Shown: positions 33,430-42,708 of the stretch, piece by piece | Numbering within the stretch: position 1 is the first letter of the stretch | Layout: every line of letters starts with the position of its first letter | Source of the DNA: Klebsormidium nitens | Taxonomy: Eukaryota; Plantae; Klebsormidiophyceae | Direction: 5' to 3' | Length of the DNA stretch: 64,000 bases | NCBI GenBank assembly: GCA_000708835.1 | Contig: DF237279.1 | Coordinates: 37,856 to 101,855, forward strand | Position numbers and translations under genes: made by a program | Notes under the pieces: model-generated | Told to the model about the DNA's origin: nothing | The model's database searches: none | The model's input: only the letters and a program-made list of their open reading frames with translations

Positions 33430-33537
33430 GCAACTTCCCTCCGCACGCTTTACCGTGGTCAGGTAGTTAGGGTATGATCTCAGCATCAGAACAGTGGTGT
33501 CACAAGGACAGCCACTGTCTTCAGCACCCCTAGTTGC
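33430..33537 (-). promoter_or_regulatory. TPP riboswitch aptamer in the THI1 3' UTR
   Basis: Minus strand reads GCAACT-AGGGGTGC...GCTGAGA..ATACCCT..ACCTGA-CCACG-GTAAAG-CGTG-CGGAGGGA-AGTTGC. P1 GCAACT/AGTTGC, conserved UGAGA, P5 CACG/CGTG. Lies 128 nt after the THI1 stop codon. Confidence 0.95.
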
Positions 33538-33665
33538 ATCAGGATTGTGGCACGTTGACACAAGACCGTGCACACTGACACTATCTGCAGTGCATCAGAC
33601 CCAACTTCAAGAAGCAAGATCTCCTGCCTGTACAAGATGCATAACATTTCTAACTAGAAGGGAAC

Positions 33666-35664
33666 TTAGGCAGACGCGGTAGTGTCGTCAGCATCGGCCA
33701 GGATGAGCTCGGGGACAACACCAGATTCGCTGACCATTGTTCCGTCAATGGCGTTGGGGAGGCCAAGGGCCTGGAGGGCGAGGTGACCAGCCTTCTGGCC
33801 AGAGATCATCATAGCACCGAAAGTGGGGCCCTGTAGCAGAGAGAAAAGGTTATGTTGAATAGGCTTCTGCTTGCAGAGCAAAATTGAGGGACAAAACAAA
33901 CTTCAGGCAAAGACAGAAGTGCTGCCTGATTGCTTGCATCGGAGGATAATGCAAGAGGAGAAAAGGGCGTAGCTATCTGCCTTCCGATATAGTGACGGGC
34001 AATGCTCTAATGAGCAGTTTGCTGACGAGAACTCCCTGCAAGCAATTTGCAGCATTGACCGATGTGCACCCCGGACCGTTACCAAAGAACATTCATCTAC
34101 AGACCACAGCTAACTTTCAGTGGCAGATAATCTCCCAACACATGTAACCCCTCCTCTCACCATCCTGGGGGCGCCCTCAATCTCAGCCACCTCCATGCCA
34201 GTCACGATCATGCCAGGCACGACCATCCTGGTCAGAGCAACCACAGCATCCTCAGCCTTGTTCATGTCCAGGGCCTTCATCCCAGGTACGTTGTCGACCA
34301 GGCCCACGGACTTGAGCCTCTTCACACCAGTGGCTCCCATGGGGCCATCGTGACCGCAGGAAGAGACGACGACCTTGGACTCCATGGCGTTGGGGTCCAT
34401 GCAGGACTGGGTGTCGTGGTTCTGGGACACCAGGGACCAGTTGGTCACGACTCCACCGACGGCACCATCCCTAGGACAAAAAAGACAAGATGATAAGAAC
34501 TAAGAATGCAGAAGTTAAAACCTTTAGTCTTCATGCCAAGAAAATTCAGAATGGACCACCCAGGCATGGAGAGTTACAAACCGCGGGTGAGCAACTGAAT
34601 ACACCCGAAAATTTGACTGATGCCAGTCTGTCAGGCAGCAGCAGACACTACATCAATCAAGGGAGCTATTGAAAAGCATTGCAGTATGATCATTGAATTG
34701 GGTCGACAAAATTCTGCGATGCTTCCCCGGGTCAATGCAGAATACAAAATCAGGTCCATCAAACCACTGTCAGGTCTTGAAGAAAAACGAGTTGCGAAAG
34801 GCAATGTTGGTCATCCAACCTGATGATCAGGTCCTCAGCAGCGACCGCGTTGAAAAGCTTGACATTGGGGCGAGCAAGGAGCTTGGACATGATGGTGGAG
34901 GTGAAAAGGGCGGCGTGCTTGATGACCACGTAGGTGTCCATCTCTTCATAAGGGACACCAATATCATCAAGGAAGGCCTGAGCGGGCTTCCTGACGATCA
35001 TGGCACTGCAAGGGTGAAGAGTGGTAATTACTCCTACGATTTCCAACAAACTATCTGACAGGAGGCCAGCAAGTGTGCTTCCTGAGAGCATCAAGTCAAT
35101 GCAGGCGGTTGCAACATGAGGATGCAGTTGCAAATGTGCCAAGAACCAATCAAATCACAGCACACACTGCCAGAGTGCAGTCAGTGCTCTGTGATGTAGT
35201 TGCTCCAAATGCTCGGACTGTGCTGCTCAAAGCACCAACCTGAAGAGCTGGCCCCCGAGCCAGGCACCCCCACCAGGGGACACGGACTGCTCGATGATGG
35301 CCACCTTCACATTGGGGTTCTTGCTAATCTCATAAGCAGCAGACAGACCAGCAGAGCCAGCCCCCACCACAATGACGTCAGTCTCGGCGTGGGTGATCAT
35401 GTCAGTCATGTAGCGGCGGGTCATCTCCCGGGCAACAGTGGACTCCCTGATCGGCTCGAACTTGAACTTGTTGATGTCATACTTGGGCTCGCCGTAGGCG
35501 CGGGCGGAGCCGCGGGTAGAAGCGCGAACAGTGGACTTGGGGGCAGCAGGAGCGATGCGGACGCCGCAGAAAGAGCTGGTGCGGGAAGAGGGGGTTGAAG
35601 CCGCCTTGGTGGCAGAGAAGCTGGCAATGGAGCCAGAGGCACGGAGGCAGGCAGTGGAAGCCAT
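33666..35664 (-). CDS. THI1: Thiamine thiazole synthase (THI1/THI4), plastid transit peptide, 4 exons, 361 aa
   Basis: Exons 35664-35240, 35005-34820, 34470-34161, 33830-33666. Motifs [38 protein letters not shown] (sulfur-donor Cys), [16 protein letters not shown]. Confidence 0.97.
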
Positions 35665-39500: not shown

Positions 39501-42213
39501 GGGCGTGCTCCTGCGCTTCATCCCGCTCACTGCCAAGCGCATGACGGGCATCGTCTCGCGGGGGGGATCTATTCACGCCAAGTGGTGCCTCTCTCACCAT
39601 AAGGAGAACTTTGCATACGAGCACTGGGATGATATCCTGGACATCTGCTCCCAATACGATATCAGCCTGTCCATAGGCGATGGGCTGCGCCCCGGGTCGA
39701 TCTACGATGCGAACGACCTGGCTCAGTTCTCGGAGCTCGCGGTGCAGGGGGAGCTCACGCGGCGCGCCTGGGAGAAGGACGTCCAGGTACGGATCTGAGG
39801 TGCAAATTTGGAGACGTCACCTCACGTCTGATGCGGGTTTTCTAGTTTTGAAGAGTCTGCTTCAATCAATCTTCGAGTGCTTATAACGCGCATATCAAGT
39901 CCTGACGCAGGATATGCTTTCCCGGCCACTGGGTTCGATGCAAAAGACTGAGGGCAAATCCAATTGTCGTTTCTGCTTTTCCTGCCTCTGGGTTTGAGGT
40001 TAAAAGAATTCCCATAGTCGACGGAATTGGGAACTCGTGTGGTGCTCTTCTTGAGTTCTACGACTGAGGGGTCCAAAGCACTTTTGATTCCAAGACAATG
40101 TTGGAGGACAAACCCGATGGTCGTTTCTTTTTCGCAGGTGATGAACGAGGGCCCCGGCCACGTTCCCCTCCACAAGATCCCCGAGAACATGGAGAAGCAA
40201 CTAGACTGGTGCAGCGAGGCACCGTTCTACACCCTGGGCCCTCTCACCACTGACGTTGCACCCGGATACGACCACATTACGAGCGCGATCGGAGCTGCTA
40301 ACATTGGGGCCCTTGGGTGAGTAAACGTTTCTAAAGAGGGTTGACTTGTTGCTGCGCAGAGGCCATCGAGGCAATCTAATTGACGGGCTGCTTCAGGGGG
40401 ATCAATGCAGTTCTCTGTGAAGCCGACGAGCAATCACCAGTCGCTTTGAGCCACATAATGATGTCTCGCTATCATCTTCGAATTCAATGTCCCCACAAAT
40501 GTGAGGAAGATTCACCTTCCTCTCTTTGCAGTACTACTTCCGGATGTGTTCATTGCCTCAAATCCTATCAAACCGAAACTAGTGCACTTCTGACGATGCA
40601 AATCCGTTCCAAGCCGCATCGCTGATCTTTGAGCCAGCAAAATTGAGATGTGTTCGTATGCTCCCTTATTCTCAATTCTAAACTTGGATCTGCTCGTTGC
40701 AGGACCGCCCTGCTCTGCTACGTCACCCCCAAGGAGCACCTGGGCCTGCCCAACCGGGATGACGTCAAGACCGGCGTCATCTCGTATAAGATCGCCGCGC
40801 ATGCTGCCGACCTCGCCAAGCAACACCCGCACGCCCAGGAGTGGGACGACGCGCTCAGCAAGGCGCGCTTCGAGTTCCGCTGGCGGGACCAGTTTGCGCT
40901 CTCGCTCGACCCGGTGACTGCGGAGGCATTCCACGACGAGACGCTGCCAGCGGAGGGGGCCAAGGTGAGGTTCGCAGTTCTTTTAAGGCGTCTTTTTTTG
41001 AAGTTTTGTCGCTCACTCAGATTGGAAACGTTGCCCTTGACTCGATTCAGGGTTTAAGAGGCGTTTGACAAGGAGACGCTTTCGCCTTCGGGTCTGTCGG
41101 GGAGTGTCCGCTTCTCAGGTTCGCGAAGGTTTCATTCTTTTTGTTCGACGATTCTCATCTCTTACGTTCATGGCGGCAAGCGTTTGAATCGCCAAGCTCT
41201 TTGCATGAAAAGATTGCGCCAACGGACTCAGTTCATCCGAAACCCCTCTCTGCAGGTGGCGCACTTTTGTTCGATGTGCGGCCCCAAGTTCTGCTCGATG
41301 AAGATCACGGAGGACGTCCGCAAGTACGCGGACGAGCATGGCTACGGCGACGTGGAGGCGATCGAGGCGGGCATGGCGGCCATGAGCGCGGAGTTCCAGG
41401 CGAGCCATCCGCGCTGCTCTTGCAGTGCTTCTTTGCTTCGGATGTTATGAAACTTCCAGATACCCGAAAACAATACAGTGCCCTAAATTCTGAAAGCTGA
41501 AAGCTGAAAGGAAGTTTGGTGGCTTCTCACTGATAAGAGTCCAATTTGAAGAGAAGATCAGATGATTGTATAGCACATGCAGCGGATGAGGGGGACCCCT
41601 TGCAGGTCAGCGTCCATAACGCAATAAAGGAAGGGTGGGGTCGAGATCGGTGGACGAGACCCAAGTACTGACAAAGAGAAGACGGCGCGAGGTCATTGAC
41701 AGCGTCATGTGCAGCGCCGAAGGAGTGTGAATTGTGCACTTTGGCAAAAGTCGAATTGCTTCGCTCGGAGGGTTTAATCTGTAATGAGTGGATTGTTGCA
41801 GAACCGTATTTCAGCCACCAATCTGGAGGTTTTGGGTGCGTCTGTCACGTCTGTAAAGTCTGGAACGTCTCACAAACTCGGCGGTCTGCTCGCGGGTTGG
41901 CCAAGAAGACGGGACCTGAGTGGATCGCTTCGACGCTTCTATTTAAGCGGCCGGTCTGGAAATGCTGGCTAAGGTTCCTACGCCTGCTGGAGCCTCTGAT
42001 TAGGCGGCCAGATCCAAATTCTCTCATATTTCAAACCCAGTCAAAAAAGCCACAGCCAAACCCTCCCAAAAACGTTATAAGCGTCTCATCAACCCAATAG
42101 CTTGGCTGCAGGCGGCCAAGAAGACGGTAAGCGGGGAGCAGCACGGCGAAGCGGGCGGCGAGATCTACCTGCCAGAGGAGTACGTCAAGGCGCGCGCGGG
42201 GGCGTCTCCGTGA
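36515..42213 (+). CDS. THIC: Phosphomethylpyrimidine synthase (HMP-P synthase), plastid transit peptide, 9 exons, 670 aa
   Basis: Exons 36515-36885, 37403-37530, 38047-38291, 38795-39055, 39466-39786, 40138-40316, 40703-40964, 41256-41399, 42112-42213. Motifs [67 protein letters not shown] (Fe-S cysteines), [18 protein letters not shown]. Intron 8 has a GC donor (41400). Confidence 0.97.
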
Positions 42214-42600
42214 GGTGAGGCGGGCGCTTACAACATTCGAAAATGAGGGCGTCGAGAGGAACTCCCTTTAACGAGGACAAGCTGTCTTGAGATCTGAGCC
42301 GGATCTTGCTGCTTTTAGTGGAAGGATTCCGATGAGACGAATCCTGATTGATGCTGATGAAAAAGAGCAATGCGTGCGCTCTTCCTGTAGCAAGGCGTGC
42401 ATTTGATTTGTAGCAACGGTTCTCTCAGTGGGCCTCCTCTGTTGCAGTGCTTTGCAGGGCAGACTTCGAGCTCGGGCGTGCCTACGAGTGCCTCCGGAAG
42501 GTTCACCATGTACAGGCAGGATAAATGAATGGTTAGGAAGCTGTTTCCCTGGCTTGTGATTGGATCGAAAGTCGTGCATGTCTTGTGCCTGGCAAATCCT

Positions 42601-42708
42601 GCAACTAGGGGTGCTGAAGACGGCGGCTGTCCTCGTGACACCGCTGTTCTGATGCTGAGATTATACCCTAACTACCTGACCACGGTAAAGCGTGCGGAGG
42701 GAAGTTGC
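42601..42708 (+). promoter_or_regulatory. TPP riboswitch aptamer in the THIC 3' UTR
   Basis: GCAACTAGGGGTGC...GCTGAGATTATACCCTAACTACCTGACCACGGTAAAGCGTGCGGAGGGAAGTTGC. P1-P5 all pair. Flanks GGCAAATCC (42591-42599) and GGATTTGCC (42711-42719) extend P1. Starts ~390 nt after the THIC stop codon. Confidence 0.96.

Follow-up and report, generated by a model that had tools for sequence, protein, structure and literature searches.

Near-identical TPP riboswitch aptamers on the head-to-head THI1 and THIC genes of Klebsormidium nitens: probable old homogenisation followed by strong constraint

The TPP riboswitch aptamers in the 3′ UTRs of the neighbouring thiamine-synthesis genes THI1 and THIC of Klebsormidium nitens are nearly identical, which is probably the outcome of an old homogenisation, most likely by gene conversion, that did not extend beyond the aptamer, together with strong purifying selection since. 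The original prediction had attributed the match to recent copying from one gene to its neighbour or to ongoing conversion between inverted copies; exchange between the two riboswitches is upheld by the present analysis, while "recent" and "ongoing" are not. The window analysed is the whole 64-kb stretch of DNA. Thiamine (vitamin B1) consists of a thiazole half, the product of THI1, and a pyrimidine half, the product of THIC. To our knowledge, no riboswitch class other than TPP is established in eukaryotes, and the spread of eukaryotic riboswitches between genes is largely undocumented.

Gene organisation

The THI1 (thiazole synthase) coding region occupies 33666–35664 on the minus strand, and three of its exon ORFs match Pfam Thi4 (PF01946) with E values of 5e-29 to 4e-39. 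Its four exons lie at about 35664–35240, 35008–34819, 34472–34160 and 33831–33666, with limits taken from L002, a spliced transcript of a relative, and the stop codon is at 33666–33668. The THIC (HMP-P synthase) coding region lies at 36515–42213 on the plus strand and has six exon ORFs matching ThiC_Rad_SAM (PF01964). The Pfam searches were made with single exons and not with a joined protein. The THIC exon blocks match those of the relative L001, and the C-terminal exon was assigned from the L001 reading frame and an RNA joint. The last two exons are 41254–41399 and 42112–42213 (stop TGA at 42211–42213), separated by a 712-nt coding intron with GC-AG ends (41400–42111, plus strand). The RNA joint that skips these 712 nt is present in three RNA runs and can be placed within 6 nt; its frame (AEFQ/AAKK, with the slash at the joint) matches the uninterrupted frame of L001, from which the intron is absent. 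The 850 bp between the two start codons (35665–36514, from first-exon positions) may serve as a shared divergent promoter. The head-to-head order is also present in the relatives L001 and L018.

The two aptamers

The THI1 aptamer is located at 33419–33541 on the minus strand (core from P1 to P1, 33430–33537) and starts 128 nt past the THI1 stop codon. The THIC aptamer is at 42597–42719 on the plus strand (core 42601–42708), 387 nt from the THIC stop codon in the genome and 154 nt in the spliced RNA. Both match the Rfam TPP family (RF00059) across the full model (positions 1–105, E ~1e-8), with scores of 51.5 bits (E 5.6e-08) for THI1 and 52.8 bits (E 2.6e-08) for THIC. Neither was matched at the gathering score of 54.3 bits, and both were revealed by the E-value mode; a default Rfam scan thus omits them because their scores fall below the cut-off, which is due to a 37-nt insertion in P3 and the absence of P3a. 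The cmscan alignment matched the conserved TPP junction blocks CUGAGA, ACCUGA and GCG.AGGGA, the departures from the consensus being AC for AU after CCUG and UAAAG for UAAUA in L5. Single-sequence folding of four sequences gave the P3 hairpin (43 nt in Klebsormidium-type aptamers) in all four, and P1, P2 and P4/P5 in three of the four; the minimum free energy fold of the L001 THIC aptamer was without P2. Over 34 aptamer pairs in seven sequences, 96.9% of cells were paired, compared with 31–58% when the partner was slid. Variation among the seven aptamers is confined to P3, with compensatory changes at three pairs. Judged by sequence and predicted fold, both elements are TPP riboswitch aptamers of the working type and would be expected to bind TPP. 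The association of aptamers with thiamine-synthesis genes is repeated in the relatives L001, L018, L020 and L014.

The predicted count of matches between the two cores was borne out: the minus-strand copy and the plus-strand copy are identical at 103 of 108 positions in an ungapped alignment, with uninterrupted identical stretches of 46 nt and 21 nt. The inverted repeat has arms of 118 nt (33421–33538 and 42600–42717), 93% complementary and spaced by 9061 nt, and is the sole inverted repeat of at least 30 nt found by a repeat search within 30000–46000. A 31-nt aptamer core pattern, expected 0 times in the 64-kb window, is matched there exactly twice. The five mismatches fall where they had been placed before, at aptamer positions 22, 24, 34, 43 and 62 (columns 36, 38, 48, 57 and 76 of alignment A3), and their described effects agree with the predicted folds and the pair count. 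Positions 24 and 43 form a compensatory pair (U-A in THI1, C-G in THIC), position 22 gives A-U in THI1 and G-U in THIC, and the remaining two positions are unpaired, 34 in the P3 loop and 62 in the junction that follows CUGAGA. The earlier description of the flanks as dissimilar holds for the most part; the exceptions are a P1 extension of 5–6 bp and a 13-nt motif 79–84 nt upstream, which are common to both genes.

Both copies are present in independent data

That one copy is an assembly chimera or a collapsed repeat can practically be discounted. Short-read contigs break inside the shared 46-mer and their graphs cannot phase across it, which leaves formal room for such an artefact. Against it, DNA run X3 holds two haplotypes at single-copy depth: two contigs with unique flanks (depths 20.3 and 18) enter the shared 46-mer, which has a depth of 41, and two exit. 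Each aptamer with its own flanks was recovered from RNA runs of three studies, that of THI1 from three RNA runs and one DNA run. The metagenome contigs L001 and L018 independently show the same links between flank and gene. In the contigs of four runs, no aptamer haplotype other than the two parental ones was found, and none was chimeric, within the limits of contigs, which drop rare variants.

Transcripts and the upstream motif

Runs X4, X7 and X10 are RNA because they contain spliced joints. In both genes, RNA contigs connect the last coding exon with the aptamer, so that both aptamers lie in transcribed 3′ UTR; the relative's transcript L002 likewise extends from a coding exon into its aptamer. 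The THIC 3′ UTR contains a 233-nt GT-AG intron (42215–42447, plus strand) that begins one base past the stop codon. Its joint (42212/42446, cut +2) was seen in all three RNA runs and not in DNA run X3, and in X4 the retained form had a depth of 7.9 against 848 for the spliced form. On the THIC aptamer side, an RNA contig runs unbroken across 42446–42692. An extension of the THIC 3′ UTR past the aptamer (42720–43000, plus strand) was found in some RNA runs only, in contigs 42679–42999 of X7 (depth 99.6) and 42663–42959 of X10 (depth 36); X4 had no such contig despite a depth of 733 in the contig immediately upstream. These differing 3′ extents suggest variation in 3′ UTR length, as read from contigs, which cannot reveal RNA ends and lose rare isoforms and variants.

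The 13-nt motif TGTACAGGCAGGA lies at 33622–33634 on the minus strand, 84 nt upstream of P1 of the THI1 aptamer, and at 42509–42521 on the plus strand, 79 nt upstream of P1 of the THIC aptamer. No further match occurs in the 64 kb, where 0.08 matches would be expected, and TGTACAGGCAG is invariant in eight of eight related sequences, both genes included. The motif was considered as the donor of a GC-AG intron in the major transcripts, a reading that is not adopted, since its predicted best duplex partner varies from sequence to sequence and the three RNA runs showed no splice joint at or near it, in contigs that lose rare isoforms. RNA contigs pass unspliced through motif and aptamer, and no TPP-dependent splice or 3′ end was found in the RNA contigs of the three runs. 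By the logic of the land-plant switch, TPP binding would close P1 and its 5–6 bp extension and so alter 3′ UTR processing, a change at which the differing extents of THIC among the RNA runs hint; the conserved 13-mer may be part of the expression platform, acting via pairing or a factor.

Age and constraint of the aptamer pair

The relatives available for comparison are metagenomic or SRA contigs and effectively represent one clade. L001 has the same head-to-head gene pair and both aptamers. Between K. nitens and L001, differences per four-fold site amount to 0.44 in THI1 and 0.54 in THIC (Jukes-Cantor 0.66–0.96). The aptamer pair is therefore old, as relatives about 0.7–1.0 substitutions per four-fold site away carry it in the same arrangement, which is at odds with the "recent" copying first proposed. 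L001 and L018 differ by 18.3% in introns and by 16% in the UTR that precedes the aptamer, compared with 1 of 108 positions in the aptamer itself; for L001 and L020, the values are 8.1% in introns and 0 of 102 in the aptamer. The aptamer thus changes about 10–20 times more slowly than introns, and in the relatives the comparison shows strong purifying selection on it. Within the relatives, THI1-type and THIC-type aptamers are separated by 11 fixed differences across taxa. Whether L014 (THIC) and L020 (THI1), which were paired, belong to the same species is uncertain, the non-coding identity of L014 to L001 on the THIC side being ~81%, whereas the THI1-side introns of L020 differ by only 8%.

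Several other contigs were without an aptamer to compare. The THI1 loci L010–L012 had none, the THIC contigs L016 and L017 stop at the stop codon and hence lack the UTR, and L008 and L009 proved to be frameshifted bacterial contigs. The word search with THIC exons was dominated by bacterial ThiC fragments. A first metagenome scan gave no match to the Klebsormidium P4/P5 pattern, which L001 has, and the collection scanned therefore does not include that sample.

Grouping of the aptamers by gene or by species

Clustering by species rather than by gene had been put forward as the sign of conversion, and the outcome is divided. In the relatives, the aptamers form gene-wise clades with support of 92/90 and 100/99, which speaks against conversion there, while the two K. 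nitens copies join in the maximum likelihood tree at only 66/72. Per 108 nt, the K. nitens pair has 5 differences, the orthologues 7 and 10, the relatives' pair 11 and the crossed comparisons 11 and 7. With the relatives effectively one clade, the split between K. nitens and the relatives is a four-taxon problem, and the tree is star-like, with ~1 change on the internal branch and ~16 on the others. One informative site points each way: A3 column 54 groups by species and column 36 by gene.

These data bear on whether conversion is active or was recently so in the K. nitens lineage, with inverted copies 9 kb apart correcting each other, which we consider unlikely. Such activity would fit the K. 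nitens pair being closer to each other than to their orthologues, the tree joining them (forcing all THI1 aptamers together costs 1.5 lnL, AU p = 0.074), the A at column 54 in the P3 loop of both copies where all relatives have T, and the identical runs that remain as substrate. The branch support is nevertheless below the usual thresholds and depends on one site, gene grouping is not rejected by the AU test, and 5 changes on the K. nitens side and 11–12 on the relatives' side are not significantly different at such counts. Moreover, the same arrangement has stayed unconverted in the relatives across intron divergence of 8–18%, and the absence of chimeric contigs noted above is in line with this. 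Within the relatives' clade, the gene-wise grouping shows that conversion has not continued.

Flanking sequences and P3

Between orthologues, the spacers and downstream flanks resemble each other (z 4.5–12.6, except for the THIC spacer with z 1.9); between paralogues, they score close to background (z −0.2 to 3.1), so that the aptamer stands as a sharply delimited stretch of identity among flanks that are older and diverged. At the split between K. nitens and the relatives, the two aptamers were, as reconstructed, nearly identical and the flanks already gene-specific. The predicted swap of distal 3′ ends has not been fixed, each gene retaining its orthologous downstream flank in both lineages.

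Twelve bryophyte THI1 aptamers, ten of them from a second metagenome scan in which no plant THIC context was found, have a short P3 stem (CUUGCU/AGCAGG) unrelated to the 43-nt hairpin of Klebsormidium, and they also differ in P5/L5. P3 is therefore not conserved across streptophytes, and the equal P3 similarity in distant streptophytes that would have spoken for selection alone was not observed; the long P3 is evidently lineage-specific.

Origin of the match

Aptamers that were near-identical at the split while their flanks had already diverged point to an old, aptamer-limited homogenisation. Each gene would already have carried a riboswitch when gene conversion acted between the two, in the stem lineage of Klebsormidium, either at the time of the split from the metagenomic relatives or not long before it; a Poisson bound would place the last shared sequence at no more than ~1.6 times the age of that split. 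Since then, purifying selection on the whole aptamer, including the P3 helix, would have held its rate of change to about a tenth of that of introns, so that K. nitens shows 5 differences and the relatives show 11, most of which preserve the structure.

Alternatively, one gene may have received the complete switch of the other, with motif, spacer and aptamer, as a fresh copy not long before the species separated, the spacers diverging afterwards. This would equally give a star tree with near-identical ancestral aptamers, and would account for the 13-mer and the P1 extension in both genes. We regard it as quite improbable: the paralogous spacers and flanks are at background, although orthologous ones of comparable age still align, and since bryophyte THI1 also has a 3′ UTR riboswitch, an older presence on THI1 is simpler. 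The first of these arguments is weakened because the likeness of orthologous flanks may reflect gene-specific function and not age.

Ancient duplication with purifying selection alone, every position including P3 being constrained and no exchange ever having occurred, is disfavoured and in our view very improbable. The slow change of the aptamer relative to introns would suit it, as would the bryophyte six-pair P3 stem, which is kept across mosses and liverworts. Yet 17 positions changed after the split, and no more than one distinguishes the THI1 from the THIC aptamer in both lineages. Had the copies separated much earlier, many gene-specific differences common to both lineages would be expected, given ~4 changes per lineage since the split, and the unrelated bryophyte P3 implies that this arm is not universally fixed.

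Comparison with known systems

The THIC gene of land plants reportedly carries a TPP riboswitch in its 3′ UTR (Wachter et al., 2007; Bocobza et al., 2007; both as cited in PMC11521341). The Klebsormidium THIC aptamer likewise lies in the 3′ UTR and follows a 3′ UTR intron that is spliced constitutively; long and short 3′ UTR forms exist in land plants and are suggested here by contigs. Unlike the land-plant aptamers, those of Klebsormidium score below the Rfam cut-off, the RNA contigs of three runs showed no riboswitch-controlled intron, and the short form, should it be real, would end downstream of the aptamer instead of upstream of it.

The THI1 gene of non-seed plants carries a second 3′ UTR TPP riboswitch according to PMC11521341 (citing Bocobza 2007), which is also the literature basis for placing both riboswitches in the streptophyte ancestor. 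That source assigns the 3′ UTR switches to embryophytes, and its text mentions none for Klebsormidium. The dual control of both thiamine-synthesis branches is the same; Klebsormidium differs in being a streptophyte alga with THI1 head-to-head with THIC and aptamers that are 95% identical. In algal TPP riboswitches, P3 length is consistent within a species (McRose et al., 2014, PMC4260697), and paralogous riboswitches are alike within one genome there as here. That remark concerned length and was made without dating or a test of conversion against selection, whereas here the identity is dated against orthologues.

Inverted repeats can evolve in concert by gene conversion, and the present pair resembles such cases in its inverted orientation and in the sharp limits of its identity against diverged flanks. 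The Klebsormidium tract differs in that it is only ~110 nt long, is a functional RNA under strong selection and shows no detectable continuing conversion.

The locus offers a dated example in which neighbouring riboswitches shared one sequence at a definable time and then slowly diverged independently, and it adds a streptophyte alga to the land plants in which THI1 and THIC are both under riboswitch control. Conversion and inversion can be tested directly here, given the five diagnostic sites and the inverted layout over 9 kb. Tentatively, paralogous riboswitches on both branches of the pathway may be kept matched by episodic gene conversion until mismatches allow escape, as in the relatives. 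If so, the locus would document concerted evolution of a riboswitch in eukaryotes and show how a lineage-specific 43-nt P3 form could reach every riboswitch in a genome, and the head-to-head pair would be a unit that reads the same TPP concentration via the same sensor.

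Structure and authenticity of the two aptamers

The TPP aptamer cores of THI1 (window 33430-33537, minus strand) and THIC (window 42601-42708, plus strand) are equal at 103 of 108 positions when the latter is aligned, gap-free, with the reverse complement of the former, which confirms the inverted match in the original prediction. A repeat search within 30000-46000 returned the pair as the sole inverted repeat of at least 30 nt, and the window contains just two occurrences of a 31-nt core, versus none expected. Both aptamers match the Rfam TPP model over its full length (51.5 and 52.8 bits, E about 1e-8); the default Rfam scan lists neither, as both scores are under the gathering score of 54.3. 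Single-sequence folds predicted P1, P2 and P4/P5, together with a long hairpin for P3. The places and structural effects claimed for the five differences were borne out by the folds, pair counts and alignment: aptamer positions 24 and 43 are a compensatory pair, position 22 changes from A-U to G-U, and positions 34 and 62 are unpaired. In the THIC copy, the five sites correspond to window 42622, 42624, 42634, 42643 and 42662. With 96.9% pairing in the structure counts, variation confined to P3 and three compensatory pairs, the aptamers look functional. The flanks had been described as dissimilar, and they are so except for a short P1 extension and a 13-nt motif 79-84 nt upstream, which are common to both genes.

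Contigs of a DNA run indicated that both copies are genuine. A 7.1-kb contig (depth 20.3) enters the aptamer from the THIC side, and a 2.1-kb contig (depth 18) bears the THI1 variant between flanks of that gene. The 46-mer shared by the two (42663-42708), which is not phasable in short-read graphs, has a depth of 41, and two contigs exit it, one into each downstream flank. These are therefore two single-copy haplotypes, each with its own flank, and an assembly chimera is ruled out as the source of the twin aptamers. In K. nitens and in two related contigs (L001 and L018, described below), the flank downstream of each gene is still the orthologous one, so a swap of the 3' ends has not gone to fixation.

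Gene context and transcripts

Between the aptamers, Thi4 was matched on minus-strand exon ORFs and ThiC_Rad_SAM on plus-strand exon ORFs, with exons searched one by one; the two genes are therefore arranged head to head, with 850 bp between their start codons and an aptamer at the outer, 3' end of each. The closest named THI1 proteins are those of land plants (70-85% identity). About 3 kb past the THI1 3' end, there is a 729-codon plus-strand open frame (28159-30348) with an abundance of charged residues and serine.

Contigs from one DNA run and three RNA runs of different studies were compared over 41000-43700. Two spliced joints were present in the RNA runs and absent from the DNA run. The first removes the last coding intron of THIC (41400-42111, plus strand, 712 nt), which is GC-AG if placed to keep the frame. 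This intron is absent from L001, where the frame AEFQ/AAKK is uninterrupted, and is thus a gain or loss between close lineages. L001 likewise lacks the intron that separates exons 2 and 3 in K. nitens THI1 (34473-34818), and a spliced THI1 transcript from a relative (L002) maps to that contig as one 506-nt block (L001:10978-11483). The second joint removes a 233-nt GT-AG intron in the THIC 3' UTR (42215-42447, plus strand) that begins one base past the stop codon and is reminiscent of the first intron in the THIC 3' UTR of land plants. It is spliced efficiently, with a depth of 848 versus 7.9 retained in RNA run X4.

A single RNA contig is unbroken across 42446-42692, running via the 13-nt motif into the THIC aptamer. 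The THI1 aptamer variant is present in a 386-nt RNA contig, whose length fits the span from the start of the last THI1 exon to the shared 46-mer. RNA past the THIC aptamer extends to about 42960-43000 in two runs, at full depth in X7, but is absent in X4 (42720-43000) although the depth just upstream is 733. Since contigs cannot show RNA ends, this no more than hints at alternative THIC 3' ends, and the difference between the RNA studies may come from a regulated choice of the 3' end or from an effect of the libraries.

In the upstream motif, TGTACAGGCAG is invariant in 8 of 8 sequences from both genes, and the two copies are the only instances of the full 13-mer in the window. The RNA runs have no joint at this motif, which is therefore not a major splice donor, and its best predicted pairing partner differs from sequence to sequence. 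By analogy with land plants, we infer that the switch would control 3' UTR processing.

Relatives with the same gene pair

Used in a word search, THI1 exon 1 led to an 83%-identity fragment on a 25-kb JGI metagenome contig, L001, which has THI1 and THIC in the same head-to-head order, each with its aptamer (51.7 and 53.0 bits). The L002 transcript reaches into the aptamer and is 96% identical to L001, and L018 belongs to another taxon of that metagenome. Among Logan contigs of SRR14092358-60, L019-L021 carry THI1 and L014 carries THIC; the assignment of L014 and L020 to one species is uncertain. Four-fold sites of K. nitens and L001 differ by 44% (THI1) and 54% (THIC), or 0.66-0.96 substitutions per site, and their introns are past alignment. 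L018 also has a 987-residue Helitron-like/PIF1 helicase ORF (L018:8173-11136) about 4 kb downstream of THI1, and the region past THI1 is therefore not syntenic with that of K. nitens.

The THI1 aptamers of the relatives are all identical save one base in L018, and their two THIC aptamers are identical, while the same comparisons gave differences of 8-18% in introns and 8-16% in the UTR just upstream of the aptamer. The whole aptamer, including P3, thus evolves at least ten times slower than adjacent non-coding DNA.

The relatives' aptamers cluster by gene (support 92/90 and 100/99), with 11 fixed positions separating THI1 from THIC, and within this clade there has been no mutual conversion of the copies. 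Ongoing conversion, as originally proposed, is thus not demonstrated. The deeper split between K. nitens and the relatives is a star tree. The maximum-likelihood tree joined the two K. nitens copies with support of only 66/72, and a constrained all-THI1 grouping was not rejected (AU p = 0.074). Among 17 variable columns, 15 are private to one lineage, one favours the species grouping and one the gene grouping. Per 108 nt, there are 5 differences between the two K. nitens copies, 7 between THI1 orthologues, 10 between THIC orthologues and 11 between the relatives' THI1 and THIC; K. nitens THI1 differs from the relatives' THIC by 11, and K. nitens THIC from the relatives' THI1 by 7.

P3 across streptophytes

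Twelve bryophyte THI1 3' UTR aptamers (68-70 bits where tested) were compared, one of them from a locus whose protein is 94% identical to Riccia fluitans THI1. In every one, P3 is short, with a variable loop on a conserved six-pair stem, and bears no relation to the 43-nt hairpin of Klebsormidium; there are also differences in P1, P5 and L5. Simple conservation of P3 across streptophytes is thereby ruled out for THI1, the gene compared, and both Klebsormidium genes share a lineage-specific P3 form. Within the bryophyte set (L003, L004, L023, L025, L030, L031, L040, L042, L053, L057, L058 and L062; drawn from several metagenomes associated with moss and peat), the P3 stem and the P4/P5 sequence are common to all, and only the length and sequence of the P3 loop vary. 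P3 length is consistent within species in algal TPP riboswitches (McRose et al. 2014, PMC4260697), a pattern of which the K. nitens locus offers a dated example at the level of sequence.

Two prokaryote-like loci (L022:3256-7519 and L059:3294-6202) have a single TPP aptamer with a thi4-like gene and thiC in succession after it, an operon counterpart of the algal pairing. At L029:4786-4817, L032:1778-1809 and L043:6512-6543, there are aptamers that resemble those of eukaryotes in P1 and the 3' half, but these loci had no coding match to THI1 or THIC.

Timing and probable mode of the exchange

About four changes have accumulated per lineage since the split of K. nitens from its relatives, and at most one distinguishes the two genes in both lineages, which suggests that the aptamer copies were matched to each other at about the time of that split. 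A Poisson bound on the internal branch dates the last common aptamer sequence to at most about 0.4-0.6 split-ages before the split. The matching is old in absolute terms and, provided that the THI1 switches of bryophytes and Klebsormidium are homologous, came far later than the origin of the riboswitch on both genes.

Orthologous spacers gave z values of 4.5-8.0 for THI1 and only 1.9 for THIC, and orthologous downstream flanks 9.2-12.6, whereas paralogous spacers and downstream flanks gave -0.2 to 3.1. The flanks had thus already diverged when the aptamers were matched. Conversion between riboswitches already present on both genes would give core-only identity inside gene-specific flanks, and it fits better than a fresh copy of one gene's switch onto the other because the identity is limited to the functional core, although functional constraint on the flanks would weaken this argument. 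The original interpretation is therefore partly supported from sequence comparison: exchange between the riboswitches of the two genes is supported, while the proposed recency is not, the event being old and not demonstrably continuing.
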